In this document: piece after piece, positions 19,566-53,387 of the stretch
Position numbering within the stretch: position 1 is the stretch's first letter
How the letters are laid out: each line of letters opens with the position of its first letter
Assembly (NCBI GenBank): GCA_001643675.2
Contig: LSRY02000003.1
Span: 2,170,001-2,234,000, forward strand
DNA length: 64,000 nucleotides
Direction of reading: 5' to 3'
DNA from: Monocercomonoides exilis PA203
Lineage: Eukaryota > Protista > Preaxostyla
Notes under the pieces: model-generated
What the model was told of the DNA's origin: nothing
What the model saw: only the letters and a program-made list of their open reading frames with translations
The model's database searches: none
Position numbers and translations under genes: made by a program

Positions 19566-20251
19566 ACAAAACGTTTTGTGACCTCACTTGTTTCACATTT
19601 GAAATTATATTTTGTTTGGATTTTGTGATCAGAATACACAAATATAAAGTTCATTTATTTTCAATAAAAATGCTTGCAGTTTCATATTTTCTCCTCTAAT
19701 TATAATTTTTCGATTTCAACTATTCTGTCTTTGAAATGAGTTTTTTTTGTCAAAAATGAAAAAATTAATTTGAATAATTTTTGATAATTTTATTATTTTT
19801 ATTATTTTTTTATTTATATTTGCAATATTTATTTTTGTTTTATTTAAAGATGTTAATGCTCTTCTCATAATAATTTTCTTATTCATTTATTATTAACATA
19901 TGTTAAATTTATAGAAAATATTTTTTAGAATTGCTTGCAAATAATTTAATAAAAACTTTTATGGAAAATATATTTTTCAAATTTCCATTAAACAAAATAT
20001 ATGGATTGTAAATGGATTGATTCAAAAAGCAAATTCAATTTTTGTAAATCATATTGAGTACACGTGAGAGAAACGAATGCGAACAAGACATAAATTGATA
20101 TCCACATGCACAAAAGCAAACAATTTTACAATATTATCAACGATTCATAAGATTTCCTCTTCGATTTTCCCTTCACATTGCATTTCTCCCCTCTCCACCA
20201 ATTAAGCCTTCATTCATATTCATTCCAATCAAATTGCATCACAGTTTGAAA

Positions 20252-22420
20252 ATGATTAGGATCACAGTATTAGCTCAAATACTCGCTGCATTCCTCACCA
20301 TAAATCTCGTTCATGGAGAAGACATCGCAAACAGCATCATCAGAGGCGCTCGCCCAGACAAGGTGGAACATGCATCGGGAAATCACATCTGTGGTGCTCA
20401 GACAAGCCTCGCCCTCATCAACACCTCCTTGTGTGTGACCCATCTCAACCTCATCCCTCTCAGTGGCTGTCCACTCCTCACTGCCCAACACCACTCCGCT
20501 GCATCCATCTCCTCCTCCACTTGCACCATCCACCCGCCTTCACTCAACAACCACCACCACCACCACCACCAATGCCCCCTCTTCCTCTCTGCCCATGCCT
20601 CCCTCGCCCTCACAAACTTCTCCCTCACCACCCGCCAACCTGCCATCTTCTCCTTCCCCCTCTTCTCCACCCCAAACAATCTCCTCCCAGATGCCCACTC
20701 CCCAATCCCTGCCTCCTTCTCCATCTCCCACTCCTCTTTCTCCTCTTTCGTCTCCCTCACCCAGCCTTTCCTTTTTTCTCCTTCTTCCCTCTCTTCCCCT
20801 TCCCCTTCTCCATCCCCTTCTCCATCCCTTTCACCTTCATCTTTCTCATCCTCATCCTCATCCTCTTCTTTTTCCTCCCCTTCCCCTTCCCTTTCCCCTT
20901 CCATTTCCTCTTCCCCTTCCCCTTTCCATATCTATCACCAATCCCATCCCCACCTCCAAATCCATCTCAATCTCCATCTCTCAAACACCCTCTTCTCCAA
21001 CATCTCCTCTCCCCAATCCCCTCGATCTCTTCCATCCCTTCCCTCCCACTCACTCCATCCTTTCCTCTCAACCACTTCTTCCTCTTCTTCCACTTCTACC
21101 TCCACCAACATCAATTCAATCCCCTCCTTCTCTCTTCATTCATCCCTCTCCATCCACTCAACCATCTTCCTCCACACCCACAACCCCATCGATGGTGCCA
21201 TTCTCCCCAACCTCAACAGCCCTGCCACTTCTCTCTCTGCCTTCAACACTTCTTTCCTCCACCAAACTCGATCTTTACCAAATGATCCTGTTGTACATGT
21301 TGTAAATGAAACTCAAAGAGTGAAACCTGGAAGGTTGACTTCATTCGATGAGAACAGCCATAAATTTGAATGGTGCGAATGGAACGATTCAAATGGTGGT
21401 AGTGACCATGGAGGTGCACTTAAAATTATTTGCACAAATGCAAATCTCTCAATCGCTTCTTGTTCATTCAATAATTGTTCAACCACAGGCAATACTGCAG
21501 GTGGAGCCTTATTCTGTCAAAATTTGTTGAAAATTTCTCTCACAAAATCCAATTTCACAAGTTGTTCAGCTGCTCATGGAGGAGCAGTCACCTCATGGTA
21601 TCCGCAATCAAATTCTGCTTGGACATTCCAAGATAACAGAGTGGAAAGCTGTTCAATAACTGATTGGTGTGGAACTGGTTGGTATTTTGGAATCTATAGC
21701 ACGCCTTCAGATGCTCAATTCCTGTTCGCCAAATGCAAGTGCATATCAAATTCTGGTAACGATTCTGCTGGTTCTCTCACATTTAATCGTCCTCCACAAA
21801 ATAAACCAAGTCAGTTTTCAATTAATGAGTGTCAGTACATAAATAATAAGTTAACTTCTTCTTCCTCATTTGGAGGAGCTGCCATTTATTTTCATTTAAC
21901 TTTTAATTGGATGAATGGAATGAAATTCATCACTTTCTGTTTCTTCGATGGAAATATAGCTGCAAATGGAAGAGGAAATGATGTATTTTTCAGTGGCAAT
22001 TCCATAACACAATCTCCGTTTGAAAATTGTGGCTCAACAACCCAAGCAAAAAGAGTGTGGAATAACAATACAGCTGATAGCAATGTGAACGATGGCTGGC
22101 TCTGGCTTTTCTTTTCATATTCTTCAATGGAATTTCTTTCTTTCTTCTATCTCTTATTTTTTCTTTATCATCACCTCTCATCGCATTCCTTCTTTAATCA
22201 TTTATTCCAAACTTTTGATTTCAACTGCATTTTGTCATTTTTCCCTGTTTGTTATTTCGCTTCTCTAGCATTTTTGTCTGTTTATCCAAAAACATTTCTT
22301 TGTTTAGGCAGTTCTTTTTTCTTTTCTCAAGCTCAACTTCCAACTCAAATATCAAATCCAAATATATTCTTCCTTTCTTCCAAAGATATCTTCAATCCTC
22401 TCAATTTCATTTCCATTTAG
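20252..22420 (+). CDS. Beta-helix (Pmp-like GGA/FxxC) surface protein copy A: signal peptide, Ser/Pro/His leader and variable module
   Basis: Hydrophobic N-terminus MIRITVLAQILAAFLTINLVHG. Repeats of SFxxC..GGA[LVI], plus FCFFDGNxAxNGRGNDVFF. Family homology ends near 22100 and the ORF reads on into a T-rich trailer. Confidence 0.75.
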   Translation: MIRITVLAQILAAFLTINLVHGEDIANSIIRGARPDKVEHASGNHICGAQTSLALINTSLCVTHLNLIPLSGCPLLTAQHHSAASISSSTCTIHPPSLNNHHHHHHQCPLFLSAHASLALTNFSLTTRQPAIFSFPLFSTPNNLLPDAHSPIPASFSISHSSFSSFVSLTQPFLFSPSSLSSPSPSPSPSPSLSPSSFSSSSSSSSFSSPSPSLSPSISSSPSPFHIYHQSHPHLQIHLNLHLSNTLFSNISSPQSPRSLPSLPSHSLHPFLSTTSSSSSTSTSTNINSIPSFSLHSSLSIHSTIFLHTHNPIDGAILPNLNSPATSLSAFNTSFLHQTRSLPNDPVVHVVNETQRVKPGRLTSFDENSHKFEWCEWNDSNGGSDHGGALKIICTNANLSIASCSFNNCSTTGNTAGGALFCQNLLKISLTKSNFTSCSAAHGGAVTSWYPQSNSAWTFQDNRVESCSITDWCGTGWYFGIYSTPSDAQFLFAKCKCISNSGNDSAGSLTFNRPPQNKPSQFSINECQYINNKLTSSSSFGGAAIYFHLTFNWMNGMKFITFCFFDGNIAANGRGNDVFFSGNSITQSPFENCGSTTQAKRVWNNNTADSNVNDGWLWLFFSYSSMEFLSFFYLLFFLYHHLSSHSFFNHLFQTFDFNCILSFFPVCYFASLAFLSVYPKTFLCLGSSFFFSQAQLPTQISNPNIFFLSSKDIFNPLNFISI

Positions 22421-22794
22421 CATGCACCCTAAATCAAGTATTTCTTTTCCTATCCTCTTCCAATTTTCATTTGAAATTTTTTCCTTCATCAATGTATTTA
22501 TTTGTTTCCATTTCTTTTTTCTCTTTATTTCTAATGCTGACACAATTGATGGAGAATTCAAAATGGATGAAGTGGATTTTGAGGAAACTGTTGTGCGACA
22601 TGTTGCTGGAGTTTTGGAAGAAGACGAAGATGATGAAGAAGAAGATGATGAATAAATAGAACAAGTTGATTGATAGTTGAGATTTGCGGATACAAATGTT
22701 AACTATAAAAAAAACAGGGAGTTTCTCTGAAATCATTTTTTCTGGTTTTTCAACTTTGTTTCCGTGCTCTTCTGACAAGCAGAATCCTCCAATT

Positions 22795-24347
22795 CCTCCC
22801 TCTCCATCCACTCAACCATTTTCCTCCTCATTCACAACCCCATCGATGGAGCCATTCTCCCCAACCTCAACATCCCCTCCACTTCTCTCTCTGCCTTCAA
22901 TGTCTCTTTCCTCCATCAAACACGCTCTTCACCAAATGATCCTGTGAAATATAACGGATCTGAATCTCAAAAATTGAAACTAGAAAGAATGTCCTCATTC
23001 AGCCTGAATAGCTATCTCTTTGAGTGGTGCGAATGGAATAATTCAAATAGCGGAAGTGATTGGGGTGGAGCACTTTATGTTTATTGCACAAATGCAAATC
23101 TCACAATCACTTCTTGTTCATTCAATAATTGTTCAAATACAAATCACGGTGGAGCGTTATACAGTTACAGTTTACAGAATGTGAACATCGCTAAATCCAA
23201 TTTCACAAACTGTTCGGCACTACATGGAGGCGCAATTTGTATTGATGGTCAAAAATCATCTTCTGTTTATTCATTCTCAGATAATAGAGTTGAAGGGTGT
23301 AAAATAACGGGCATTTATGGAACTGGTTGGTATTTCTGGATCTATAACATGACCTCAGCAAGTCAATTCCTGCTCACCAAATGCAAGTGCATTTCAAATT
23401 CTGGTGGTGATTCTGCTGGTTCTCTCACATTTCATTACCCTCCACAAAACAAACCGAGTCAATTTTCAATCAATGATTGTCAGTTTAGAAACAACAAATT
23501 GACAAATGCATCTTCTACACGCGGAGGTGCAGCGATGTGTTTTTATCCTCCATATCCTTGGATGAGTGGAGTTAAATTCATCACATTCTGTTTCTTCGAT
23601 GGAAACACCGCTTCTAGTGGCAGGGGAAACGATGTGTTTTTTAATGGAAGTAATATCACTCAATCTCCATTCCAGCAATGCGGCTCAACAACTCCAACAA
23701 AAAGGGTGTATAATAATGGACAAGCAGATAATGCTGAATATAATGGCTGGCTTCCGATCATCAACCAGAACAAAATAGTATCAAATGGTGGAACTGATGC
23801 CGATGCCTGTGGCAAAACACAGCAAAGCTCCTGTGCCACAGTGGAGTATGCTCTCGGATGCGTTGCTCCCTTCAGCGATGCCTCCCTCTCTCTTCTCGTC
23901 TCCACTTTCACTCCCACAAACACTCTCACATTCAATGCAATTGACACAAAAATCACTGGAAATGATGAACTTTTTCTGATTTCTTTATTATTCTTTCCAT
24001 TTTCCATATCAGAGAAATATCCAATTCCTATCATCTTCTTTTCATCAGAAGTTTATTTTTTTCAATCAATTTTTAATCTCCGCTCGTATAAAAACATTTC
24101 TTCTTCTTTTCTTCATCAAATTTCACTTTTTCATCAAATGAAAATTCCGCTTGTTGCTTTAAGGAATCATCCGTTTTCCTCTCTTCTATCATATCAGAAA
24201 GCTCTTCAAAAGCATTTATTTCCTCAGCATTCATATTTCAACATGCTTATATCCGATTCACTCAACTGCCTTTTATTATTGCACTTCAAATATGCCTTTT
24301 CCTCAAAATCGCTTTCTCTCTTTGTTTCATCTTCAATGGCTCATTAA
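22795..24347 (+). pseudogene. Leaderless beta-helix cassette B (family homology 22795-23963)
   Basis: Begins at SIHSTIFL..HNPIDGAILPNLN just after an in-frame TGA, with no ATG or signal peptide. The frame is open to KITGN, then runs into trailer sequence. Confidence 0.75.
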
Positions 24348-25584
24348 AAGTGTATCGCATTGAGAAATCTCTCAAAGATCAACCATATAATAATTTGTTC
24401 CAATAAACATCTTCTGTCTTGCTCTTTCTGTTTTCGGTGAATTCTTTCAGCTTCCAAATTAATAATTCAGATTCAATTTCTATTTTTTATTGTGCACTTT
24501 GTGGTCGGCTTTTCTCGATTCAAAATAACATCACTTCCGTTGACATATAACTTCAGCTGATATTCATTAATTGAATAAGTATTTCTTTGTATCTTTCCAA
24601 ATCGCAACGATAGACGATGTCTGGCATTGAATTCGATGAAAGTTGAAGGAAATGAAAAAAAAAAGCATCGTTTTTGTTGCTCATTGAAGAAGTCGAAGAA
24701 GAAGTTGATTTGAATGAAAAGACGAATTTTTTTCTCATCAGAATAATGAATGAAACATAAAATGATAGCATATTTGGTGAACGGTCGTTGAGAGGAAGAA
24801 AAGTGAATGAAATAATTGTTAGTTCAATTTGTCTGCGCTTCCAATTGCACAGCTTAAATGCAACAGAAGGTCGATGTTCCGATTCAACTCCAAGTTAGTG
24901 AAAATTGCATTGAAGTAGTTGGAGAAGAAGAAAATGGTGAAGTTGAAGATGGCACAACTGGTGGGAAAGGACTAGATGAAGAAAAAGATGAAGAAGAAGA
25001 TAAGATGAATGAGAGATGAACAATCAGTCAAATAATATTTCTGAAGAAGATGATGAAAATGACTTGTTTGATGTTGTCAGTTGGTGAAGTATCGCATTTG
25101 ATAAGTTGATTTCAGAAGGAATATAAAACCCCATTCACAAATAATATTGGACAATTCGCATTTATTTGTCAATGAAAACTGATATTCTCAGTTCATTTGC
25201 AAACTTTGTGTAGTTGCCTCTTCTTTCTCTTCAAAAAAAAATAATGATGTTCATCCATTGACTATGAAAATGCAAACAATATAAATATCTGATGAAGATA
25301 TTGGCAAAGACGATGACGAAGACGAAGAAGAGGCAGAAGAAAAAAAAGAAGGTGATGAAGGAAATAATGAAGAAGGTGAAGAAGAAGACAAAGAAGAAGG
25401 AGAAGAAGTTTTATATGTTGAATATTTCTGTCGTAAAAACAGAAGCTTTCAGATTGCATTTCTCCGAATGAGAATGTTCTCATAAGCTTATTTTGGAATC
25501 CATGGGAAGAAGAAGATGACGATGGGATTATTAAATTAAACAGTATGAGAGAGAGAAAGAAAATGAAAAAGAATACGTAGTCAA

Positions 25585-28235
25585 AGAAGAAGAAGAAGAA
25601 GCAATATTTGACTGAAGAAGATTTTGCGTGTTTTTGGCCATGCGATTCATAACATGCGTGCTTGTCGCTGAATAAGCAAGTGAATTGTGAGAAGGCGAAT
25701 TTTGTGTTTGCAAACCGAGAAATGAGGAAAATGGTCGATTGAATGAAGGAGGATTATCAGAAGACGACGAAGAAGACGAAGAAGAAGATACAGTTGAGAA
25801 ATGCGAAATCAGTCGAACAACATTTATGAAGTTGGGAATAATTTGTGTGAAGTTGTTGATTGGCCAAAATGTCTCATTTGATATGTAAATTTCAGATTGG
25901 TTTGAAAAATTCAATCACAATATTTGTGAAGAATAGATTGTGGAAATCACTCTTGATGTATTTCTTCAAAGTCATTTTCCCTCTTTTTGCGATTTCCTCT
26001 CCATTCCTCTCAAAAATAGAAAATATTAATATTTCTTAATTTCTTTTTCTTTCCATTCCACTTTTCCATTCAGCTTACAAAATCATCAGAAAATATCAAT
26101 CCCTTCCTTTTCTTCATCTTTCCCATTTTCTTCCATAAAATCTTCTCCTCTCATAAAAACATACCCCTCTTTTGATCTAACATTTCGGAATATTCTTCTT
26201 TCAAGCTTTTGCCCTCTTTTCCTTTTTTTCAAAATCCATTTCTCCCATCAACAATAATCACCTTCCTCACCATCTCCAACCACTTCTCTATATTTTTACT
26301 ACATTTTCCTCTACAAATCTCCACCTGCTCTTCCCCACCCCTTTGTCTCAGAATTTCAATCAATCAAAAACCCCTCTCGAAAAATTAACATTACAAAATA
26401 TACTCAACTCCCGCCCTCTCCCACAAATAATCCTCTTCTATCTCTTCTCTGCCCCATATCCCTCATGTGCAAGGTGTTGATGAGATAAACATCAAATATT
26501 TCTTTTGGTGGTTGAGAATATTATTAAAGGAGATGATCATGCCAAAAACAGAAAAAACCCCTTTGGACATCCACCACGATGTGTACGGGCTGAAAAGACC
26601 CTCCAGTGAGATGTACAATGTATTTTGTAGAGATGCATTCTTTGTTGCAATTTGACCATTCTGGTGCTGAAATGGAGAGATTGATTTATTTTTTGAATGA
26701 TGATGGCTGTGGAAATGAGTGTGCTTCGCAAAAAACGAGTGAAGTGCAGTTTGTTCTTTATTTATTTTTCTATATATGAATATTAACCTGTTGAATGTTT
26801 TTGTGTTGTTTTCAGGGCAGGAGGTGGAAATAAATGAAAATGAATGAAATGTTTATAACTCATTGTGCAGGGTGACCACCGAGTTGGGAGAGCGAATTCA
26901 TATGGAAAGTGCCCAGGATGAAGGGATTGGGAAGGGAATTGGAGATGATATTTTCAGACGAGAAAAAGGATTATTTTCAATGATGAAAATGGAATTTGAG
27001 CAGAAAACGTAAATTTCACATTTTTCAGAAGAGCAAGAAATCGCTGCATTTGATGGAGAAACAACTGATGGAAAGGATTATTTGCGAATCAGATGATAAA
27101 ACACTTGAAAAAGGAAGGAATAATGAAATTGAATTGAAGAAAACAGGTGCCAATTGGATAAAATATAGATATTACCAATAAAAAAGTTTGGAAGGTTTGT
27201 TGTTATTATTTATTTTTTTGATGTGATTATTATTTTGTTTTAAGAATGCTAAAAGGATGAGGGATTAGAGGCTTTGAAAAAGAAGAAGAAAAGCAGGGAA
27301 GGAAAAATAAAGACGGACAGATGAATTTCAAGATATTATGAAGATGCCTGGCATTAACCTTTGGCGAAGAATTATTTTTGAGGAAAGATGATTTTTTGTG
27401 AAAGAAGGGGAAGTGAAAGAAGAAAAGATGGAATGAAAAGGGGATTGACGCGTGCTTTGTATTTATTGTTGGAGAGAGAGAGAAAGAGATTGAGCTGAAA
27501 GTGAAAAAGGATTCAGAGATTTCTCCTCTGCAGAAGAAAAAGGAACATAAGAAGAAAATTCGATTGAATTTCTCCGTTGGTATTAATTGACACTCATCTC
27601 TCATTTTTCAACAATTAATCATCTCATTCATTCCATTCGTCATCATGATCTTCTTCCTGTTCTTTAAACACATCAACAACATTTCACACAACTTCTTCTT
27701 CTTTATCGTCATCCACTTCATCTGATTGGATTTCTTCGAATTCTGCGTTGAAATCAGAGATCATGAATGAAATGAAGAAACGGAGAAATTTTGCGGCTGA
27801 AGGAAATAATCTCAAATTAAAATGAGAAGAAGAAGAATGAAAGAAGAGGAGAAAGAGAAAGAGAATGAGAATGAAGAGATTATTTTGAGAGGAGAACTGG
27901 AAAGGAAATGGAATCAAGAAGATTGAAAATATTTTTTGAATGAAAGGAAGAAGATGAACGAATTTCAAATATGAGTTGGAAATAAAATTTGAGAAGAGAA
28001 GGAAGGTTGAACAGCACAAAAGAGATTATTTGGATAAGAAAAGGAAGATGCTTTAGAAGCGAAAAAATTGAAAAGGGAAACAACAAAGAAGACAAATCGA
28101 TGAATTACGGGAGAAATCAAAAGTTATGAAAAGAGAGAGAAAAGAAGGAAAGAGATGAGAGGAGGTGATAGAGAAAGAAAAAATGAGAGATGGAAACAGG
28201 AAAAGCATTTCATCGGAGAATTTGGAAGGAAAAGC
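25585..28235 (-). repeat. Segment X (left): inverted paralogue of 46510-49110; includes a SWR1-derived fragment and degenerate coding-like sequence
   Basis: Collinear reverse-complement similarity, e.g. 26530-26720 vs 47950-48140 and 28000-28140 vs 46560-46710. Confidence 0.85.
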
Positions 28236-29205
28236 TAGAATCGGTCATTTTTATCAGTGTTATCAGCCGTATTGTTGTTCCACACTCTTTGTATTGGGGT
28301 TGTTGATCCACAATTTTCAAATGGAGATTGTGTGATGGAATTACCACTGAAGAACACATCATTCCCCCTGCCATTTTTGGCAGTATTACCATCGAAGAAA
28401 CAGAATGCGATGAATTTTACTCCACTCATCCAAGTGAAGGTGTTTGTGCAGCACAGCCCAGCTCCTCCATAATTTGCAGAAGCAGTCAATTTGTTATTTA
28501 TAAACTGACAATCATTGACTGAAAATTGATTTGGTTTTTCTTTCGGAGGCCAATGAAATGTGAGAGAGCCAGCAGCATCGCCACCGGAATTCGATATACA
28601 TTTGTTGTTTGAAAACAAAAATTTGCAAGTTGATGTCATATTTTCGAGCCAGAAATACCAACCAGTTCCACGCCAATCAGTTATTGAACAACTTTCAGCT
28701 TTGTTTTCCGTGAATGACCAATCAGAATTTGATTGAGGACCCCAAGAAGTGACTGCTCCACCATGAGCAGCTGAACAGCTGGTGAAGTTTGATTTTGCAG
28801 TGTTAATATTCAATAGTTGCCCACAGTATAACGCTCCTGCTTCCCCAGTAGTTGAACAATTGAAAAATGAACAAGAAGTGATTGTGAGATTTGCATTTGT
28901 GCAAGAAACAGAAAGTGCGCCACCATAACTTTCTCCACCAGTTGAATCATTCCATTCGCACAATTCAAATTTATGGCTGTTCTCATCGAATGAAGTCAAT
29001 CTACCTGGTCTCTTTCTATCAGTTTCATATCCAATGTGTTCAACAGGGGCATTTGATGAAGAACGTGTTTGATGAAGAAAAGAAACATTGAAGGCAAAGA
29101 GAGAAGTGGATGGGCTGTTTAGGTTGGGGAGGATGGCACCATCGATGGGGTTGTGGGTGTGGAGGAAGAGGGATGAGTGGATGGAGAGAGAGAAGTTGGA
29201 GGATT
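28235..29205 (-). pseudogene. Leaderless beta-helix cassette C
   Basis: Runs from SIHSSLFLHTHNPIDGAILPNLNSP to RVWNNNTADNTDKNDRF* with an open frame and no leader. Confidence 0.75.
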
Positions 29206-29362
29206 TTGTTTGCAAAAAGATCAACGAAAATGGAAGAAGAAAAAATGATATCAACGAAACACTCCGATTTTTTATTTGTAATTATTCATTTTCGCAAATA
29301 TCAGCCTTCAATCAACTCATCAATTCATTTATCATCATCACCTTCTTCTTCTTCCAATTTTT

Positions 29363-29452
29363 CTCCTTCTCCTTCTCCTTCTCCTTCTCCTTCTCCTTCT
29401 CCTTCTCCTTCTCCTTCTCCTTCTCCTTCTCCTTCTCCTTCTCCTTCTCCTT
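29363..29452 (+). repeat. (CTCCTT)n hexamer microsatellite
   Basis: Read directly from the sequence. Confidence 0.9.
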
Positions 29453-30527
29453 CTTCTTCTTCTTCAATTTTATCATCATTATCATCATTTCAATCTTCTT
29501 TTTCTTTTTCTTTTCTTTTTTTTTCCTTCTTCTTCTCCATCATTATCCTCATCATTATTTTCTTTATCTTCGTCTTCTTCTTCGTTTTCTTTGTTGCATC
29601 ATCATTAGGCATTTGATTCATTTGAATTTTTAACGGTGACAGAACAGCATCATTTTCAGTTTGCGAAGGGAAAGGCAGGGATCTCACAAAAAGGCAATCA
29701 ATTGACTTTGAGTGAATATTAAAAAGTTTATAGGCTTGAAAGTGTCAGTCATAAATATTGCAATTTGGATTATTATCTCCTTGTGAAGTCAACTTGTTAA
29801 ATAAGATGTCATATTCAGTCGACAACGTCATATGGAGCCTTATCATGTTCTTCTTCAAAAAAATCATCTGATTATTCAAAGATTTCTCTGTTTCCATTTT
29901 TATTTTCCTTTTTTTACTATCTTCTTCGCCTTATTCTTCTTATTCGTCAAATTCGTCTTATTCATCGATCTTTGACTGTTTTGCCGCTCCCTCTCGCTTG
30001 ACATTGGGAATGAGCATCCTCATTCGGAAACATTTATGCATTTTCAGTCAGCAGAAATACCGTATGAACCAAAAATTGTTTCATTTGCATTTCCTCCTCT
30101 CGACATATCAATTACTGAATGGTTTATATTTCCATTCATATTATTTGTGGTAAAAAGTCTATTTGGGCCAAAATCAGTCTTTTCATTCTCGTTATGTTCT
30201 TCTTCAACGCCTTCTTCAAGGAACAACAAAAATGTTACAATTTTCTTCTGATGCATCTCCCGTGGAATTCGAAGTCAAACATTGTCATCAATTTTCTATT
30301 CATAATCGCAAAATGAAAATTCATTCTTGTATTGAATTTCAGCCAGGCCTAACACAGCAACGAAATGATTCTATATTTAGCCAAGAAAAGTCTGTCAGAT
30401 GGCGTTAAATAAAAAAGGTGGACTATTTTGCCATATTGGATGTTCTTCTTCAGATTTTAACAATGTTACAAGCCTTCAACATGCGATCAAAGATGAGACG
30501 ATGACGGAAAGCGATTTGGAGGAAAAT

Positions 30528-35330: not shown

Positions 35331-35340
35331 ATATCTCTAT

Positions 35341-40900: not shown

Positions 40901-41873
40901 AAATTTTTTTTTACACTTTTTTCTGGATCAGAGAACAGAACTTCAAACGCATTTATTCCATTCAATTCAACAGCTCCGCAAAATTGAACGGAAAATTGCT
41001 TCATTTCCTTTTCTTCGTCTCTTCAATCAATCAATAAAGGAGCTTTCTTTTCATTTTTCAATCACGATTCCTACGAAGAAAAAAAAGATGTCTTCACAAA
41101 TTCATTCATTTCATTCAAATCAACTTCTTCTTCGATTTCTTCAACGATCAATAAAAATAATGTTGAATTTTACGTTTCATTCAACTCCCGTTAAATCCAG
41201 GGCCAAGCATCATCTTTCATTTCGTTCAGAAGCACAAATGATTATTCATTCTTTCACAAAATATCAACTGAAGTTATATTTCCACGGAAGTGATTCTGCA
41301 CAAAGCAAAGAAAAGTTTGCACGTTATCAACAACTGAATCAATTCTGACTTATATTATTTTTAAACTCAAGCATATGAAGTGAAAAGGAAATGGTATAAA
41401 AGCAATTTTTGTTTGGAATGAATGAGTTTGAAAATAGCCTTCGACTGATTACACAGCTACGAAGCAACAGCGAATTATTGCAAATGAAACGATGAGGAAG
41501 AAAAGGAATCGAGAGGAAAAGGCATATTTGAAGAGAAATTATAGAGATTCTTGCTCTTATTTGATACGAAAATTTTGAAATCGGAAAGTTGAGAAAATAA
41601 ATGTTTTTGAAGAACTTTCTGATATGATCGAAGAGAGGAAAACGGAAAATTGCTTTCAACAATGAGCTTTATTTGCATTGGATGAAAAGGAGAAAATAGA
41701 GGAAGAAATGACGAAGAAATGGTTTTATACGAGCGGAGATTAAAGATTGATTGAAAAAAATAAACTTCTGATGAAAAGAAGATGATAGCTGATGGATATT
41801 TCTATGATATGGAAAATGGTCAAAATTAATAAATGGAAGAAATTATAAAGAAATAAGATAAAGGTTATTGTTT

Positions 41874-42980: not shown

Positions 42981-44520
42981 GAAAGAGAGAGGAGTGAATG
43001 GAAAGAAAGAGAATGAATTTTGCCATTGAATTAAATCGAGAATTTGCTTCAAAATATGAAAATTTCTCAAAATAAATAATTTTAGCATTTATTTGCATAT
43101 GATGTTGAGATAATTAATTATTTTATCACAAACAATTTTCGATGAAATTTCTATGATGGCAAATATGAATTTCTTTTTGTTTCTCTTTTTGTTGAATCTT
43201 TTTAGAATTAATATCCTTTTGATTTCTGCAAATAATTGGAAAATCATTTATTTTTAACCCAATAGTCAAAATACCTTTTGTATTGTTATCTGAATTATCT
43301 TTTGTTCAATCGAAAATACCTATTTTATTGAGAATGTACTTCTTTTGTTTTGTCACTTCATATACTGTTTTTATATTTATTATTTTGCAACCAGGAAATG
43401 AAAAATTGATTTTTAAAAACAATTATTAATTTTTCATTTTGGAAGGAATCAAAAGTCAAGTTCAACAATGACTTGATATTCAAAAATATTTCCTTAAAAA
43501 AAGTCATTGTTGTTGACCGAAAATAATGAAATTCTGAATGTTAATTTTGGTATTCATATTTTTCTTTGAATTTGATAATTTCTTCGTTTGTTCACTTTTC
43601 AATTCTGTATTATTGGATCTATTTTTTAGAAAAACCAAGAACAAAACATTCTCATAAGTTTTTTGGTTTCATTCTTTTGTTGAAACAATCAAGTGATGTT
43701 TTGATTGATATGTGAGTTTATTCAATGATATTTCCACCAAATCATTCTTTTCAACTGAATAAAAAAATGAAAAATAGTTATTTGCATCCCAGTTATCATT
43801 TCATGAATATTCAATTAATATTTATCATCACCTTTTTTGAATTCTTTTTCAATCGAATGTTATCACAGGTTCAAATATTCATTATCACAATTTTTGTTCT
43901 TGTGAGAAGCTTTTTGAAAAAATTTTTTGTCTGTTCTTCTTCAAATGATTCGTTGTGAAGGCCAAGATTTTTTTCATATTCTGAACGAGAAAAGTAATAT
44001 TCTCCGTTCTCAAGTTTGTCTGTTGTTGACAACAATAGTTCAATATTGGGTGATTATCTTTGAAATCATAACAATAATCTATATTTCAGTGTTATCCTTC
44101 AGTTGTTTTTCACATGTAGATTCTGGAAATGTGAATGTTTGAAGTGACAAATTTTAAACAAAAAGTTGAAAAAATAAACAAAGAATAGAAATACACTTCA
44201 AAACAATTATTCTTCTTTTTTGAGAAATGAAAATTGAAATTATTAATTTTTATAATTTTGGAATGATGAATGACAGGACGTTTGAGACATCAATAAGAAT
44301 GAAGTTTATCCTCTCAATGGAAAGGACTCATTTTATATGAAACAATGAATAATAGAATACAAATTCTTTTTCCAAATATGAATTGCAAACAATGATAGCC
44401 TGACATATTGTTGAAATAATTGGAAAGTTATTCTATTTCCTTTCTTTTTATGCAATACCAAAAAAACAAAATGAATAATTTCAAATGAATAATTTGTTTT
44501 GTTTGCTAGTACTTTATGGA

Positions 44521-44753: not shown

Positions 44754-45434
44754 ACAATATCATCTTTTTTTCATTGAAAAATACATTATCCTTGATTGGT
44801 CAATGCAAATACAGTATCAAATAACGATTAATATTACAAATGAAGTGTTTTGTTTTAGAATTTCAAAGATAATTTAGCAAAATGATAAACAGTGGAAATA
44901 TTCACGCCAAATGTCAATAATGTAATGATTTTTTAAGATGAAATAATAAAGTCATCCTTTAATTCACTTTCACCATTTTATTCTTAAAAACTTGTTCTTT
45001 CACAAATAAATGAAATGAAAAAATGAAATGATTTATTAATTCCGAATTATCCAGTGTTCAAGCCAGAAAACGAATATTTAATAACAGTGGTATATTTCGA
45101 TTTCTTGTTGAATTATGTGTTTTCAGTTTTCTCAGAAATAAATATCTTTATAAATTGCGATCTGTTTGTTTTTTTGAAGATAACGTGACAACGAAACAAA
45201 ATAAAAATTTAATTATTGATTCAAAAATTCATTTCTATAATTTTTTAATTTTCATTTTCATTGCAGAAAACACAAGGCAATTTTTTTTCATCAAAAGGAA
45301 TAATTCAAAGGAAAAGTGAAACAATTTGATCAATTTCATTTTTTTAAATATAGCAAACTGCAAAAGCTCTTTCAACAAAATCAATCCATTTTAAAACATC
45401 CAATTCATCATTCGATTTCCTTCTCGTCCCATCT

Positions 45435-46509
45435 CTCACTTCCATCCCTTCCCTCACACTCACTTTATCCATTCACCTCAACCACTTCCTCTTCTCTCTC
45501 TTCCACTTCCACAAACACCAACACCAATACAATCCCCTCCTTCTCTCTTCATTCATCTCTCTCCATCCACTCAACCATCTTCCTCCTCACCCACAACCCT
45601 ATCGATGGCGCCATCCTCCCCAACCTCAACAGCCCATCAACTTCTCTCTCTGCCTTCAACTCCTCTTTTCTCCACCAAACACGCTCTTCATCAAATGCTC
45701 CTGTTGTATATGAAGGAACTGAAATCGACAGAAAGAGACCAGGTAGATTGACTTCATTCGATCAAAACAGTCATCGCTTTGAATGGTGCATATGGGAAAA
45801 TTCAAGTAGTGGATCTTCAGCAGGCGGTGCACTTCATGTTGAACGTGCATATGCAAGTCTCGCAATCACTTCATGTTCGTTTTTCAATTGTTCAACAAGC
45901 GATCATGGAGGAGCATTGTATTGTCACAGTTTGTCAAAAATTAATTTTGAAAAATCTAATTTTTCAAATTGTTCTGCATTACATGGAGGAGCGAATTGTG
46001 TAGTTAATCCTCTATCCAATTCTGTTTGGACATTCTCGCAAATTAAAGTGGAAACTTGTGAAATAACTGATTGGTGTGGAACTGGCTGGTATTTCAGACT
46101 CAATAACATGCCAAATAATGCAAAATTCTTGTTTTCAAGCTGCATGTGTATCGCCAATACTGGTGGTAATTCAGCCGGATCGTTAACATTTTATGACCCT
46201 CCAAATAACAAACCAAATCAATTTTCAATCAATGATTGCCAGTTTAAAAACAACAAATTGACAAGTGCATCTTCCACACGCGGAGGAGCTGGACTGTGTT
46301 GCACAAACACCTTCACTTGGATGAGCGGATTCAAATTCATCACATTTTGTTTCTTCGATGGAAATACTGCAACAAATGGCAGAGGAAATGATGTGTTTTT
46401 CAATGGCAGCAGTATCACCCAATCTCCTTTCCAGCAATGTGGTTCAACAACCCAAGCAAAAAGAATGCAAATTAATAAAACTGCAGATTATCAGACTTTC
46501 AATAGCTGA
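45435..46509 (+). pseudogene. Leaderless beta-helix cassette G
   Basis: Runs from SLPSLPSHSL through THNPIDGAILPNLNSP to CGSTTQAKRMQINKTADYQTFNS*, with no signal peptide. Confidence 0.75.
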
Positions 46510-49110
46510 CTTACTCTCATTTTTGCTTTCTTTATAATCGCCTCTCCTCTCATTCCTTCTTTTCTCTCTTTTTTCATAACTTTTGATTTCTCCCGTAATT
46601 CATCGATTTGTCTTCTTTGTTGTTCTGCTTTTCAATTTTTTTCGCTTCTCAAGCATCTTCCTTTTCTTATCCAAATAATCTCTTTTGTGCTGTTCAACCT
46701 TCCTTCTCTTCTCAAATTTTATTTCCAACTCATATTTAAAATCCATTCATCTTCTTCCTTTCTTCCAAAAATATCTTCAATCTTCTCAATCTCATTTCCA
46801 TCTTGCATGAGCCCTTGATCAAGATTTTCTTTTCTTTCTTTTTCTTATATTTTTTTTGTTATGTTTTCCTTCAGCTGTATAATTTCTCTGTTTCCTTTTC
46901 ATTTCTCTCTTAATCTCTGATGCAAACGCAGAACGTGAAGAAATTCGATCAGATGAAGTGAATGAAGAAGAAGAAGAAGAAGTTGTGTGAAATGTTGTTG
47001 ATATATTTGAAGAAGAAGATGATGATGAATGGATTGAATGAGATTATTAATTGTTGAAAATTGAGATGATGAGTATCAATTTTCATCAACGTAGAATTTC
47101 ATTGAAATTCTCTTCTTCAGGATTTTGTCTTCTTCTGGCAAATAATATCCTTTGAAATTCATAGCAATTTCAATTTGATTCTTTCTCTCTTTCCAACAAA
47201 AAATATGAAATATAGGTCAATCTCTTTTTCATTCCATTTCATTCAATTTTTCGCTTCCCCTTCTTTCACAAAAAATCATCTTTCCTCAAACATAATTCTT
47301 CGCCAAAGGTTAATGCCAGGCATCTTCATAATATCTCGCATTTCATCTGTCTGTCTGTATTTTTCCTTTCCTGCTTTTCTTCTTCTTCTTCAAAGCCACC
47401 TAATCCTTCGCTCTTTCAGCATTCTTAAAAAAAAATAATAATCACTTCAAAAAAATAACAATATCAAACCTTCAGAACCTATTTTTAAGCCAATGCCTAT
47501 ATTTTATCCCGTTGGCACCTGTTTTCCTCCAATTCAATTTCATTATTCCTTTCGTTTTCAAGTGTTTCATCATCTGATTCCCCAACCATCCTTTCCATAA
47601 GTCATTTATCCATCAAGTGCATCGATTTCCCTTCCTTCTGAAAAATGTGAAATTCATGCATTCTGCTCAATTCCACCCTCATCATTGAAAAATATCATTG
47701 TTTTTCGTCTGAAAATATCATCTCCAATTCCCTTCCCAATCCCTTCACCCTGGGCACTTTCCATATGAATTCGCTCTCCCAACTCCATAGCCACCCTGCA
47801 CAACGAGATATCCCGCTTTCATTCATTTTCATTCTTTTCCACCTCCTGCCCTGAAAACAACACAAAAAACATCAAAAGGCAAATGTTCATATAAAGAAAA
47901 TAAATAAAGACCAAACTGAACTTCGACTGCTTTTTGCCAAACACACTCATTTCCACAACAATCATCATTCAAAAAATAAATCAATCTCTTCATTTCAGTC
48001 TCAGAATGGTCAAATTGCAGCATGGAATGCATCTCCACAAAATACATCGTGTATCTCACTGGAGGGTCTTCTCAGCCCGTACACATCGTGGTGGATGTGC
48101 AGAGGTGTTTTTTCTGTTTTTGGCATGATCATCTCCTTTAATAGTATTCTCAACCATTAAAAGAAGTATTTGATGTTTATTTCATCAACACTATGCATAG
48201 GAGGGATATGGAGCAGAGAAGAGAAGGAAGTTTAATTTTTGTGGCAGGGGGTGGATGTTGAGAATTTTATGGAATGTTAATGTTTCAATAGGGGTTTTTG
48301 AATGAAAGAAATTTGGAGACAAAGGGATGGAGAAGAGCAGATGGAGATTTATAGAAGAAAATGTAGAAAATATGTAGAGAAGTGGTTGGAGATGATGAAA
48401 GAGGGCTTATGGTTGAAAGGAGATATGGAATTTGAAAAAAAGGAAAAGAGGGCAAAAGCGGGAAAGAAGATGAATATTCTGAAGTGTTCAAATGAAAGAG
48501 GGGTATTTTTTATGAAAGGAAATGATTTTATGGAAGAGACAGGGAAAGATGAAGAAAAGGAGGGGATTGATATTTTCTGATGATTTCGTGAGCTGAATGG
48601 AAGAAGGGAATGGAAAGGAAAGGAAATTGAGAAAAATCAACATTCTCTATTTTTGAGGGGAAAGGAGGGGAAATCGCAAAAAGAAAGTGAATTGACTTTG
48701 GAAATATGCAACTTGAGTGATTTCCACAGTCTGTTCGTCACAAATATTGTGATTGAGTTTTTCTAACCAATCTGAAATTTATACATCAAATGAGACATTT
48801 TGGCCAATCAACAACTTCATACAAATTATTCTCAACATCATAAATATCGTTCGACTGATTCCGCATTTCTCAACTGCATCTTCTTCTTCCACATCATTTC
48901 CTTCTTTTTCATCATCTTCTTCTTCTGATAATCCCCCTTCATTCAATTAACCATCTTCCTCATTTTTCAATTTGCAAACACAAAATTCGCCTTCTCACAA
49001 TTCACTTGCTTATTCAGCGACAAGCATGCCTGTTATGAACCGCATGGCCAAAAACACACAAAATCTACTTCAGTCACATATTGCTTCTTCTTCTTTAACT
49101 TCAATTTCTT
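46510..49110 (+). repeat. Segment X' (right): inverted paralogue of 25585-28235
   Basis: See segment X. It contains the second SWR1-derived fragment at ~48915-49095. Confidence 0.85.
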
Positions 49111-49981
49111 CTTCTTCTTCTTTGACCTCGTTCTTCCTCATACGTTCGCACATTCACACAGCATCTATCTTCATTTCAAAATTTGTGATCCTTCTTTTCT
49201 TCTTCAACGCCTTCTTCAGTGAACAACAAAAAATTGTCATTTCCATTTCATTCAGCTCCTGTCAAATTCAGGGCCAAGTGTCATCTTTCATTCTTACTCA
49301 GAAATACGAAAGAAATATTTATTCAAATAATGAATGTCAGCAGAAATTATGATACAACGAAATGGAAGTAACTTTTAGAGGAGAATAGGCTATTAGCAGC
49401 GCAAAATAAAAAAAAAAGTGAGGTTGATTTTTCCCTTTTTCATTTGGAAGTTGAAAGAATTCACAGAAATTATAAAGAACATGGCAAAAGTGATATTTGG
49501 AATGAACGAGTTCCGAAATTAACCTTCGATTGATTTTGCAAACTCAACCACAGCGAATTGTTGGAAATGAAACAATGAGGAAGAAAAACAATATTGAAGA
49601 AAAAGCATATTTGAAGACAAATTGCATGAGATTCTTGCTCCAATTGGATACAATTTAGATGGAATGAGAAAGTTAAGGAAAGTTTAATCTGAAGAAAATT
49701 GCCAGATGTGATTGAAGAAATGCTATTTAAAGAAAGGAAAACGGAAGATTCCTAAAAGCAACAGCAGAATTTGCATTTGATGAAAAGGAGAAATTAGATG
49801 AGGAAATTTCAAAGAAATGTGTTTTATGCGATCCGATGTTAGACTTCTCGAAAGAAAAGTGACGATATGTTCTCGTGTTGAAAAGAAGATGAAAGCTGAT
49901 GGATATTTCTATGATATGGAAAATGGTCAAAAATGAGAAAATGGAATAAAGAATAAAGAAATAAGATAAAGGTTATTGTTT

Positions 49982-52036
49982 TCAGTGATTTTTTGTATCA
50001 ACCGCGCTGAAAGAAAGTGTTTGAGTGGGAACAAATGCTGAGGTGAGGAGGGTGAGAGAGGCGTCTTGGGGATCTGTCATGCGAACAAGAGCGAATTCTA
50101 TTGTTTTGCATGGACTGAGTTGTGTGATTCCGCAGAGATCGGTGTTTGCTCCATTATTTGACACGATTTTGAATGTTGTTATGAGAGGAAGCCATCTGTT
50201 GAACTCAACATCATCAGCAGTTCCTTGATTCCACACTCTTTTTGATTCTGTTGTTGATCCACATTGATTGAATGGGGATTGGATGATGCTACTGCCATTG
50301 AAAAACACATCGTTTCCTCTGCCATTTTTGGCAGTGTTGCCATCGAAGAAGCAAAATGTGATGAATTTTATTCCATTCATCCAGGAATAAGTTGAATAGA
50401 AGAAAATGGCAGCGCCTCCATAATTAGTTGAAGTTGATATCAATTTGTTGTTTATGAACTGACATTCATCAATCAAAAATTGACTAGGTTTGTTACTTGG
50501 AGGATAACGAAATGTTAAGGAGCCAGCAGAATCGTTACCAGAATTTGAGATGCACTTGCATTTGATGAACAAGAATTGAGCACTTGTTGGTGTACTTCCC
50601 ATGTTAAAATACCAACCAGTTCCACACCAGTTTGTGATTGAGCAATTTTCCACTTTGTTTTCTGAGAATGAATAAACGGAATTTGACTGTGGAGTATATA
50701 TTACAACAGCACCTCCATGAACTGCTGAACAACTTGTGAAATTCGATTTTGTGATGCTGATTTGTAATAAATATTGACAGAATATTGCTCCTCCTTCACC
50801 ATTGCTTGATGTACATTTGTTGAATGAACAAGAAACTATTGTGAGATTTGCATTTGTGCAGTTAACATAAAGTGCACCACCCCAGGCACTTCCACCTTTT
50901 GAATCATTCCATTCGCACCATTCAAATTGATAGCTGTTCAAATCAGTAAATGGCAAACGACTTAATTCCTTTTTTTGAGTTTCGGATCCGTTATATCTTA
51001 CAACATCATTAGAGGAAGAACGTGTTTGGTGGAGAAAAGAAGCATTGAATGCAGAGAGAGAAGTGAATGGGTTGTTGAGGTTGGGGAGGATGGCGCCATC
51101 GATGGGGTTGTGAGTGTGGAGGAAGATGGTTGAGTGGATGGAGAGAGATGAGTGAAGGGAGAAAGAGGGGATTGTATTGAAGTTGATGTTGGTGGCTGTG
51201 GAAGAAGAGGAAGAAGTGGTTGAGAGGAAAGGATGGAGTGAGTGGGAGGGAAGGGATGGAAGAGATCGAGGGGATTGGGGAGAGGAGATGTTGGAGAAGA
51301 GGGTGTTTGAGAGATGGAGATTGAGATGGATTTGGAGGTGGGGATGGGATTGGTGATAGATATGGAAAGGGGAAGGGGAAGAGGAAATGGAAGGGGAAAG
51401 GGAAGGGGAAGAGAAAGAAAAAGAAGAGGATGGAGATGAGGATGAGAAAGATGAAGGAGAAGGGGAAAGAGATGGAGAAGGAGATGGAGAAGGGGAAGAG
51501 AGGGAAGAAGGAGAAAAAAGGAAGGGCTGGATGAGGGAGATGAAGGAGGAGAAAGAGGAGTGAGAGATGGAGAAGGAGGCAGGGATTGGGGAGTGGGCAT
51601 TATGGAGGAGATTGTTTGGGGTGGAGAAGAGGGGGAAGGAGAAGATGGCAGGTTGGTGGGTGGCGAGGGAGAAGTTTGTGAGGGCGATGGAGGCATGGGC
51701 AGAGAGGAAGAGGGGGCATTGTTGGTGGTGGTGGTTGTTGTTGAGTGAAGGCGGGTGGATGGTGCAAGTGGAGGAGCAGATGGATGCAGCAGAGTGGTGT
51801 TGGGCAGTGAGGAGTGGGCAACCAGCGAGGGGGATGATGTTGAGATGGGTCACACACAAGGAGGTGTTGATGAGGGCGAGGCTTGTCTGAGCACCACAGA
51901 TGTGATTTCCCGATGCATGTTCCACCTTGTGTGGGCGAGCGCCTCTGATGATGCTGTTTGCGATGTTCTCTTCATGAATGAGATTTATGGTGAGGAATGC
52001 GACGAGTATCTGAGCTAATAATGTGATCCTAATCAT
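49982..52036 (-). CDS. Beta-helix surface protein copy H: signal peptide, leader and variable module, ending at a frameshift
   Basis: MIRITLLAQILVAFLTINLIH. The leader is nearly the same as in copy A, the variable module differs, and the 3' end is identical to cassette F. Confidence 0.75.
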   Translation of the reverse strand: MIRITLLAQILVAFLTINLIHEENIANSIIRGARPHKVEHASGNHICGAQTSLALINTSLCVTHLNIIPLAGCPLLTAQHHSAASICSSTCTIHPPSLNNNHHHQQCPLFLSAHASIALTNFSLATHQPAIFSFPLFSTPNNLLHNAHSPIPASFSISHSSFSSFISLIQPFLFSPSSLSSPSPSPSPSLSPSPSSFSSSSPSSSFSFSSPSLSPSISSSPSPFHIYHQSHPHLQIHLNLHLSNTLFSNISSPQSPRSLPSLPSHSLHPFLSTTSSSSSTATNINFNTIPSFSLHSSLSIHSTIFLHTHNPIDGAILPNLNNPFTSLSAFNASFLHQTRSSSNDVVRYNGSETQKKELSRLPFTDLNSYQFEWCEWNDSKGGSAWGGALYVNCTNANLTIVSCSFNKCTSSNGEGGAIFCQYLLQISITKSNFTSCSAVHGGAVVIYTPQSNSVYSFSENKVENCSITNWCGTGWYFNMGSTPTSAQFLFIKCKCISNSGNDSAGSLTFRYPPSNKPSQFLIDECQFINNKLISTSTNYGGAAIFFYSTYSWMNGIKFITFCFFDGNTAKNGRGNDVFFNGSSIIQSPFNQCGSTTESKRVWNQGTADDVEFNRWLPLITTFKIVSNNGANTDLCGITQLSPCKTIEFALVRMTDPQDASLTLLTSAFVPTQTLSFSAVDTKNH

Positions 52037-53387
52037 TTTCAAACTGTGATGCAATTTGATTGGAATGAATATGAATGAAACCTTAATTGGTGGAGAGGGG
52101 AGAAATGCAATGTGAAGGGAAAATCGAAGAGGAAATCTTATGAATCGTTGATTATAATCTGAAATATCTGCTTTTGTGCATGTGGATATCAATATATGTC
52201 TTGTTTGCATTCGTTTCTCTCGTGTGCGCTCAATTTTTTATTCGGAAATTAAATAGATTTTTTTTTTTTGAAACAATTATTTTTCAGCTGAAGAATTGAC
52301 ATTGATGAATAACTTGATGATTTATTTTCATGAAAGATTTAATTTCGATTTTGCAGATAATGCCCCAACAATCTCCTCTATTAACTTGAGAAATGGTTGA
52401 AATGTATGTTATTGGAAATGGGGAAATCTGAAAAAAATATTAGCATCTCAAATAAATACACAATGTTTCGAATTACAACCAATGACTGACAAACAACAGT
52501 TGGTGATTTTAAAAAATATATATATTTTAATCAAAAAAACAATAATCCACCGAAACATTTTTTTTTCTTTTTCTAAAATACACAAATTTGATAATTAATC
52601 TGTGAAATACAAAATTCAACTTTGTTATTAATGAATACCAAAAAAAAGGAAAACAAGTGTGTGAGAAAAAAATAACATTTATAATGAATTATGAATAAAC
52701 GAACAACGAAATGCATTTGTGGTGCTTCAAATATCTGAGGAGCTTTCGAAACAGTTGAGTCTATTATCACACATATTATTATTCAAAAGTGATTTTCTCA
52801 AAAAATCTTATTAGAATTTCTTTTATGAATAAATTTTCTGAGAAAATCAGTTTTGTTTTGGTTGAATGTCAGAAACGGAGTTTGATTTCATGCATTGATA
52901 ATACTCGTGAAATTGATGAAAATTTTAAGTTTCTTCTTCAATTTTTTAAAAAACAAACCTGAGAACAATATTTCTTTCAATAAACATTCACTTTTTCATC
53001 CCAAATGAAATTCTGAAATAAATGAGATAATTGGAGATTATTGGAGATTATTTTTGAAATCATAACTTTTTTCGATGTGAGTATTTTCACTTCAATAATT
53101 GTTCTTCATATTAATAATTCGATAACTGTTTTTTTACCTTTTAATAAATAAATTTGTTGAACTTATCTTTCAAAATTATTCAAACCCAGTATTTTTTTCA
53201 GAAAAATCACTTTGAAATGAATTGGTTTTTGGCTGAGTGTCAGAAAGTGATGAAAATTTTCATTCAGTCAATATTTGAAAAAAGGATGAGAAATTGAACC
53301 TCTGTTAATACTATTTGTCATTGAACAAGAAAATTTTTTATTTTTTAAAAAAAAATCATCATAAAGGAAATCGGATTATTTTCATAT

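Follow-up and report, generated by a model that had tools for sequence, protein, structure and literature searches.

Truncated beta-helix ectodomain copies and mosaic gene conversion in a chromosome-arm array of Monocercomonoides exilis

In a handful of pathogens, antigenic variation is known to be driven by archives of gene fragments from which mosaic gene conversion draws. The msp2 "functional pseudogenes" of Anaplasma marginale and the vlhA clusters of Mycoplasma synoviae serve one or very few expression sites, and variation has been observed experimentally in these systems. Most archived copies of the variant surface glycoprotein (VSG) of Trypanosoma brucei are pseudogenes with disruptions, and one allele at a time is expressed, from telomeric sites. 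Large families of receptor-like kinases with variable repeat ectodomains also occur in protists: the transmembrane kinases of Entamoeba histolytica were once discussed as possible variant surface molecules, and to our knowledge no archive of ectodomain pieces with conversion tracts has been reported for this family. Here we analyzed a stretch of 64,000 nucleotides (nt) ("the window"; C25:2,170,001-2,234,000) on C25, the largest chromosome (2,548,433 bp) of the flagellate Monocercomonoides exilis PA203. A previous sequence-only reading of the window had described eight paralogous modules of about 1 kb, named A to H, as a possible antigenic-variation locus with a leader-bearing expression site and silent leaderless cassettes. 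We report that these modules are part of an array of truncated copies, which spans ~1 Mb (~1.48-2.51 Mb) of the right arm of C25. The array was amplified from junctions of single origin within this one arm, modules were replaced under constant flanks, and the cassette-like copies underwent mosaic gene conversion with each other.

Module replacement and conversion tracts in the C25 array

To place the modules in the genome, the assembly (82.3 Mb in 101 contigs) was searched with the F module, which returned 1,982 first-look candidates. The 117 matches that were scored were strong in each case (117/117; E below 1e-138), and the figures for family and array that derive from this search rest on them. 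Among the best genome matches scored, 59 fragments map to C25 1.48-2.51 Mb, and matches on the left 1.3 Mb of C25 and on other contigs are mostly full-length genes. In addition, we examined 264 kb, i.e. the window and 100 kb on each side, and detected 37 ectodomain fragments, five of which possess a leader while 32 do not. Extrapolating from this density, ~140 fragments would fit in the arm, and the array reaches to ~40 kb from the chromosome end. The conserved 5' region of the modules contains a nearly invariant polypyrimidine block of 21 nt (21226-21246 on the plus strand, also 22880-22900 and 35419-35439; positions given without chromosome name are those of the window). Since 37 copies lie in 264 kb and the 21-mer occurs 316 times in the genome at up to two mismatches versus 0 times in a reversed control, repetition of the modules is far beyond chance.

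The ends of the copies follow a simple scheme. At the 3' side there are two classes, each with one common breakpoint followed by 2 kb or more of non-coding flank that its members have in common: 20 copies end at residue 657 and 12 at about residue 583, counted along the reference protein L001, which is used throughout to give the coverage of copies in amino acids (aa). Several classes are distinguished at the 5' side (U1-U4 and leaders, either complete or partial), and the upstream flank is specific to each class. The 5' classes pair with both 3' classes and, therefore, recombination inside the module is required. Most or all members of the flank families are located on the right arm of C25, and no evident open reading frames (ORFs) were present in the flanks inspected. 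For instance, the non-coding 5' flank of copy E (class U2; 33863-35299, plus strand) is 82-84% identical to the upstream flank of copy F (42987-44470) and has 14 matches in the genome, eight of them near full length and all 14 located at C25 1.94-2.49 Mb. Such flanks had been taken for decayed remainders of the gene, but they are flank families without coding function that are common to array members and joined to the modules at few fixed breakpoints. The "657" flanks were also considered as the rest of the gene; an nhmmer search against two full-length genes yielded only low-complexity or non-colinear weak matches, and this idea was abandoned.

Replacement of modules under these flanks is evident from the distribution of divergence. 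Shared flanks or leaders, which differ by a pairwise divergence (K) or synonymous divergence (dS) of 0.03-0.15, carry modules with a dS of about 0.75. The non-coding 3' flank of copy C ("583" family; 25562-28246, minus strand), of which at least 40 copies were scored, mostly at C25 1.5-2.44 Mb, is ~86% identical over 2.5 kb to the flank of copy G (46543-49123), yet the modules of C and G are ~74% identical with a dS of 0.76. In copies A and H the leaders are 92-100% identical (dS 0.07) and the modules exhibit a dS of 0.78.

Individual conversion tracts can be delimited. The tract in E (35587-36432, plus strand) comprises ~846 nt with at most two mismatches to F (about 41944-42789, minus strand) and has abrupt edges, the adjacent DNA being 55-90% identical. 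A second tract, in F (41850-42249, minus strand), encompasses 400 nt that are 100% identical to positions 49958-50357 in H, identity changing from 62% to 100% at the 5' edge; it includes the 1-nt insertion of F, which causes a frameshift, and the stop. H is most likely the recipient in this case, because its further-downstream flank belongs to another subclass than that of F. Near-identical tracts, the longest measuring 846, 437, 400 and 333 nt, connect copies that are 78-88% identical overall. Comparison of the 37 copies revealed numerous tracts of 130-440 nt that contain two mismatches at most, in pairs with an overall identity of 75-88%. Tracts of at least 100 nt that recur in other sampled copies, often in several partners, make up 40% of a fragment on average, in a sample estimated to represent ~12% of the modules of the genome.

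Full-length genes appear to take part in this exchange. Two of them, L001 on contig C2 and another one on the left arm of C25, 1.7 Mb away, share tracts of 116-138 nt with fragments of the array, and in the clearest cases the columns concerned are as similar in at most 5 of 741 pairs. We also calculated a tree of residues 455-583 (129 columns) from 36 fragments, 22 full-length proteins and 11 short annotated proteins. In this tree the labels "fragment" and "full-length" need 23 changes, compared to a mean of 23.2 when shuffled, i.e. both types are randomly intermixed.

Several further observations concern the array. Many additional inverted pairs are found along the right arm of C25. One of them, at C25:2,119,951-2,130,016 (L007-L008; 50 to 40 kb before the window), is an inverted duplicate of a D-type fragment (residues 265-1021), in which the fragments are 99.8% and the flanks 100% identical; the five differences are all C/T transitions. 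It represents either a very recent palindrome or an effect of assembly or polishing. The small contig C98 gave the same scores as C25:1,581,641-1,591,574 for three modules and is probably redundant with the array or a haplotype of it. A piece of ~240 bp from the neighboring SNF2/SWR1-type gene (ORF 133-8526; 4865-5110) recurs with 84-85% identity in the flanks of C and G (25565-25800 and 48877-49122).

The eight copies and their parent family

The eight modules in the order A+ B+ C- D- E+ F- G+ H- are real, as judged by ORF listing, repeat finding and tblastn. They constitute a 32-kb imperfect palindrome (A B C D E / F G H), in which A corresponds to H, C plus D to G and E to F, with arms of 78-85% identity. 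As the sequence-only reading had stated, the shared upstream region, the ATG and the signal peptide are confined to A and H within the window. Copy A (20082-22420 with the upstream region, 20234-22420 for the copy itself; plus strand) consists of the A-type upstream region, a start codon at 20252, the signal peptide, a Ser/Pro-rich N-region and the beta-helix module, covers residues ~1-587 and ends with a non-homologous tail of ~105 codons of unrelated sequence up to the stop. Copy H (49982-52210, minus strand) contains the A-type leader with its ATG at 52036 and the module, covers residues 1-653 and terminates at the frameshift stop of F. The upstream region common to both measures ~170 nt, and the signal peptide reads MIRIT(V/L)LAQIL... 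in both. A and H are truncated themselves, as ~2,000 aa of a protein of ~2,700 aa are absent, including the transmembrane (TM) helix and the kinase-like tail.

The inner copies are shorter at the 5' side. B (22794-24347, plus strand; residues 266-657) and C (28235-29254, minus strand; residues 267-584) are leaderless and share 5' class U1, but differ in their 3' class, which is "657" in B and "583" in C. The leaderless copy E (35300-36859, plus strand; residues 256-657) combines the 5' flank class U2 with 3' class "657". F (41874-43088, minus strand; residues 286-653) is leaderless as well and carries the 1-nt insertion near its 3' junction, resulting in the end ...TKNH followed by a stop. G (45316-46542, plus strand; residues 237-597) lacks a leader, retains a partial Ser/Thr-rich upstream remnant and has an intact frame, whereas D (30528-33176, minus strand; residues 210-1019) comprises the module and the next ~360 aa of the ectodomain, with a stop at residue ~215 at its upstream edge. 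It had been proposed that the six inner copies begin in or just upstream of the conserved ...HTHNPIDGAILPNLNSP... block and have no start. Both statements hold for most of them, the exceptions being D and G, which extend further upstream into the Ser/Thr-rich region (residues 210 and 237) with a stop at the edge of homology, and F, which has an in-frame ATG at 43088 that is present in only three of the six members of its flank class.

The C/T-rich N-region of A (20431-21305) has a GC skew of -0.47 and is open in all three plus-strand frames. It is the continuity of its frame with that of the signal peptide, found in A, in H and in further leader copies with a retained ATG, that argues for a coding region here, and not the absence of stops. 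Ser/Pro-coding microsatellites with periods of 9, 12 and 18 nt are present in two spacers (29275-29566 and 40632-40944) and resemble the Ser-rich linker of the full-length ectodomain. ORFs in the spacers were rejected as genes, as they are of low complexity and non-coding in appearance.

The parent genes are found elsewhere in the genome, where many module matches sit inside uninterrupted ORFs of 2,500-3,100 aa. The reference protein L001 (2,679 aa) is composed of a signal peptide, a Ser/Thr/Pro/His-rich N-region, the module at residues ~286-657, a long further ectodomain, one TM helix and a cytoplasmic tail. In the tail, only the C-lobe matches PK_Tyr_Ser-Thr (Pfam profile positions 163-257 of 258; ORF residues ~2380-2630), and L001 may be a pseudokinase. 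By eye, no HRD or DFG motifs were seen upstream of the C-lobe. Annotated full-length members carry Pfam kinase domains. The copies of the window share 60-78% protein identity with L001 over residues ~204-657, or up to residue 1019 in D. TM helix and kinase part are absent from all of them, and nothing beyond residue 1099 was found anywhere in the 264 kb. By homology, we therefore assign modules A to H as ectodomain fragments (starting at residue ~204-286 and ending at 583 or 657, or at 1019 in D) of a giant receptor-like family of the tyrosine kinase-like (TKL) type; they are classified as fragments rather than functional family members because no copy has a TM or kinase part.

The genome papers describe tyrosine kinases as the largest gene family of M. 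exilis, with 332 predicted members, 320 of them TKL, which overlap the "unclassified repeats" (PMC6759080; PMC8767320). The module family appears to be this family, the two fitting by description. In the published model MONOS_5057 (P0023; gene at L001:1634-9673, minus strand) the protein has 2,226 aa and starts at an internal methionine inside the module (...NMPSDAKF...), while the uninterrupted ORF encodes 2,679 aa including a signal peptide. Many annotated family members span merely 30-45% of the region of residues 200-660. For a large part of the family, the annotated models probably lack the signal peptide and one half of the beta-helix module.

An AlphaFold model of the module shows a right-handed parallel beta-helix with predicted local distance difference test (pLDDT) values of 80-94 in the core. 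Structural alignment of this model gave Z scores of 15-18 to phage tailspikes, polysaccharide lyases and the adhesin PfbA. Searches with the module against Pfam, the sequences of the Protein Data Bank (PDB) and Foldseek returned nothing significant, and there was no Pfam match to Chlam_PMP (PF02415) even at E up to 10, neither in the module nor in the 2,679-aa protein. A profile of 29 modules detected metagenomic proteins with Chlam_PMP (PF02415) and Beta_helix (PF13229) repeats at E values of 1e-35 to 1e-47, and matches to the whole module were all from M. exilis. Thus, of the label "Pmp-like" that had been given to the modules, the fold and a remote repeat relation detectable by profile can be retained, but not membership in the family, as Chlam_PMP stays below the Pfam threshold. 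The modules resemble the polymorphic membrane proteins (PMPs) of Chlamydia and other PMP-repeat proteins in their GGA-type repeats and right-handed parallel beta-helix. However, L001 has no C-terminal autotransporter barrel, but a TM helix and a kinase-like tail instead.

The first 17 kb of the window contain ordinary genes, encoding a SNF2/SWR1-type ATPase, a DEAH-type helicase and an S-adenosylhomocysteine (AdoHcy) hydrolase. Between the AdoHcy hydrolase gene and the array there are two adjacent foldback palindromes (16694-17049 and 17083-17444) with arms of 172 and 175 nt, which are 82% and 99% complementary, respectively, and a 12-nt loop each. A weaker palindrome lies beyond copy H (53509-53944). 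The foldback palindromes at the edge of the locus may resemble miniature inverted-repeat transposable elements (MITEs) or mark the boundary of the array.

Open frames and competing explanations

The cores of the eight copies in the window (286 codons; residues 290-575) are devoid of stops and frameshifts, as the sequence-only reading had noticed, and this extends to the 264 kb: 36 of 37 cores lack a stop and all 37 are in frame. Had the cores drifted as far as their flanks, 3-5 stops would be expected in each (3-4 at the pairwise K of 0.14-0.18). The flanks have accumulated 11-18 indels per kb, 80-85% of which are not multiples of three; these rates refer to flanks only, since blastn of modules at 77% identity yields compensating gaps, and the modules were judged by single-frame tblastn matches. 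The sole stops lie within a few codons of the junctions. An argument from stop density in upstream remnants compared to cores was dropped, as the stops are at the junction edges and shared by descent. Among the best genome matches scored, disrupted modules are rarer in the array (2/59) than among dispersed copies (10/53; p = 0.012).

The median pairwise ratio of non-synonymous to synonymous divergence (dN/dS) is 0.26, without relaxation in fragment-fragment pairs. Mismatches within the long near-identical tracts, which reflect recent changes, comprise 10 non-synonymous and 20 synonymous ones, although 77% are expected to be non-synonymous (p = 3.5e-7). With their intact frames and a dN/dS of 0.26, an estimate that is confounded by conversion, the modules are indeed unlike ordinary pseudogenes. 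Selection could act in expressed paralogues rather than on the fragments themselves.

Taken together, we favor the reading that the truncated ectodomain copies form a recombination reservoir linked by conversion, and consider its chances to be roughly even. The sequences show that a few ancestral truncation junctions were amplified by tandem and inverted segmental duplication, whereupon homologous gene conversion repeatedly overwrote the ~1-kb modules, either as a whole or in tracts of 100-850 nt. Other members of the array and short copies with a leader took part in this exchange, as did, at lower frequency, full-length genes of other chromosomes. Fragments would not be independent genes, but together would provide a recombination reservoir for the ectodomain of the family, and their frames would stay open as fragment sequence cycles through expressed family members or is selected for use in them. 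Homology for exchange would be supplied by a 5' block (residues ~275-314) and a 3' framework (residues ~525-574). Conservation of both blocks (residues 275-314 and 525-574) exceeds that of the core, third codon positions included, by a moderate margin. We infer the reservoir role from sequence comparison, and the reservoir may be an adaptation diversifying expressed ectodomains or a by-product of concerted evolution. A more far-reaching version is possible, but we put it forward tentatively: more than 100 leaderless, ORF-intact cassettes would be kept in a megabase archive and selected as donor pool, and segmental conversion would rebuild the ligand- or host-facing N-domain of leader-bearing short proteins and of many receptor-like pseudokinases, amounting to a VSG- or msp2-like system in an oxymonad gut symbiont.

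Several points weigh against the reservoir. The direction of conversion could be deduced in one case only, from an F-type donor to H, where it is the most likely one according to the flank subclass. Exchange with full-length genes rests on two genes analyzed as DNA (L001 and a partial L002) and on the 129-column protein tree. The pairwise dN/dS is confounded because conversion flux is high and differences largely reflect mosaic ancestry, and alleles private to one copy amount to only three non-synonymous and five synonymous changes. G and C have no close relative genome-wide (74% and 82% protein identity), yet both are intact; passive refreshing by conversion therefore fits poorly, which points to direct selection or expression. 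Finally, the assembly is based on Oxford Nanopore (ONT) reads and was Pilon-polished; it is unlikely that the long identical tracts are polishing artefacts.

A first alternative is strict antigenic variation, in which A, H and the other A-type leader copies would be expression sites, the leaderless copies silent donors, and a secreted or surface beta-helix protein would be varied over time through programmed or frequent conversion. The A-type leader with its own signal peptide is present in at least 16 copies, which are all located at C25 1.49-2.44 Mb and have open frames of 617-836 aa. In full-length genes, similarity to this leader begins only at about residue 36, and their signal peptides and upstream DNA are different. 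Such a system would account for the observation that near-identical leaders (dS 0.03-0.12) are joined to very different modules (dS 0.47-0.88), and that the 3' 400 nt of H were most likely copied from an F-type leaderless donor. The number of leader copies with open frames, the intact ORFs of the cassettes with moderately more conserved blocks at both borders, and the extension of the array to ~40 kb from the chromosome end would also be in agreement.

However, other properties of the leader copies speak against it. Their leaders appear to be young or homogenized by their low dS, and the dN/dS of 0.41-0.84 as well as the loss of the ATG in one copy suggest that constraint on them is at most weak. 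A and H end in junk or at a frameshift stop without a recognizable anchor, and it was the very tract received by H that brought the frameshift. A-type copies could be short secreted proteins or, equally, truncated relics. A single expression site, as had been envisaged, is contradicted by at least 16 A-type leader copies in addition to many full-length genes with their own signal peptides (dozens seen; 332 kinases published). What stands of the proposed design are the leaderless open copies, the replacement of modules under constant flanks and conversion tracts that reach the leader copy H. Nothing in the sequences points to programmed antigen switching or to a single expression site. Moreover, the genome papers (PMC6759080; PMC8767320) portray the organism as an endobiont, which leaves immune pressure in doubt. 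Strict antigenic variation is thus a possible but minority view, which we consider unlikely.

Alternatively, the modules could be exons or ORFs of expressed but unannotated genes with upstream spliced exons or alternative starts, forming a cluster of genes for short secreted beta-helix proteins under ordinary purifying selection. The intact frames and the dN/dS of ~0.26, which extend even to the deeply diverged copies G (nearest relative 74%) and C (82%), are what such genes would exhibit, as is the bias of recent changes toward synonymous ones. For a few fragments the annotation gives hypothetical proteins (MONOS_18537, MONOS_9953), and introns are reported to be frequent in M. exilis genes (PMC6759080). 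On the other hand, an in-frame ATG is absent from the first ~180 residues of the open frame in most leaderless copies, and there is no start that a whole flank class has in common. Between classes, the upstream flanks are unrelated; those inspected lack an evident ORF, and the majority of fragments, E and F among them, are missing from the published proteome. The location of copies on both strands excludes that they are alternative exons of a single gene. On balance, we regard unannotated genes as quite unlikely.

A third possibility is inert debris, i.e. dead fragments that were multiplied by segmental duplication on an arm rich in repeats, contribute nothing to expressed genes and have open frames only through conversion from functional paralogues. 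The high conversion flux, with tracts covering 40% of fragments although just an estimated ~12% of the modules were sampled, would permit this. Tracts of at least 100 nt occur in 9 of 74 full-length/fragment pairs versus roughly 90 of 666 fragment/fragment pairs, i.e. at a similar rate. Furthermore, most copies are unannotated, and 46% of the genome is given as repeats, with kinases overlapping the unclassified ones (PMC8767320). Yet, this explanation needs strictly one-way conversion, for which there is no known basis. Long tracts are mainly of the fragment-fragment type, and such exchange spreads lesions as easily as it removes them. The fact that G and C are intact without a near-identical donor, and the lower frequency of disrupted modules in the array than among dispersed copies, are difficult to reconcile with debris, which we consider quite improbable. 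Capture of a gene fragment by a transposable element of the Pack-MULE or Helitron type and its subsequent spread would explain identical junctions and flanks in many copies of both orientations, and the foldback palindromes at the edge of the locus, but is very improbable, given that the flank families are located on one chromosome arm rather than dispersed, that shared flanks exceed 2 kb and run into neighboring modules as segmental duplicates would, and that no terminal repeats or target-site duplications were seen at module junctions, no dedicated search for transposable elements having been made.

Relation to known archive systems

The available text of the two genome papers makes no mention of fragments, pseudogenes, a one-arm array, gene conversion, surface variation or a beta-helix ectodomain, and to that extent an array with conversion in this kinase-like family was not previously described there (PMC6759080; PMC8767320). 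The architecture of a fragment archive is met here in a non-pathogenic amitochondriate gut flagellate, where it concerns the outer domain of what appears to be the largest gene family and occupies ~1 Mb of one chromosome arm. Should the archive be in use, diversification by recombination would extend to surface receptors and would not be limited to immune evasion, and part of the 28.9 Mb of "unclassified repeats" in the genome would be explained. Even on a cautious reading, the architecture of the family is defined by a signal peptide and a beta-helix ectodomain, which are cut off in many annotated models, and the array offers an unusually clean case of module swapping under constant flanks.

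Among receptor-like families, the transmembrane kinases of Entamoeba likewise have variable ectodomains, but of a different type, consisting of Cys-rich CXXC repeats. The cassette systems (vls, pilE/pilS, msp2, VSG) and the array of M. exilis have in common donor copies that are open but start-less, as 32 of 37 fragments are without leader and most have no upstream ATG. Segmental mosaic conversion between copies, including conversion into leader-bearing ones, is a further shared trait. In contrast, cassette systems have one or very few dedicated expression sites, which the array does not.

The closest correspondence is with msp2 and vlhA. As in these systems, the putative donors are truncated at both ends, lack the start and presumably also the promoter, contain an open core, which in M. 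exilis is moderately more variable than the sequences at its borders, and are segmental mosaics generated by conversion. M. exilis differs by being a eukaryote, by the megabase size of the array, by at least 16 leader-bearing short copies and by many putative full-length recipient genes. Like the VSG arrays, the array is large, resides on a chromosome arm, forms mosaics and may have conserved cassette borders, silence being a feature of the VSG copies. Unlike VSG archives, 36 of 37 sampled modules are intact and the copies represent one domain of a much larger protein. The array differs from the msp2, vlhA and VSG archives in its presumed service to a large receptor-like family, its many leader-bearing copies and its high integrity.

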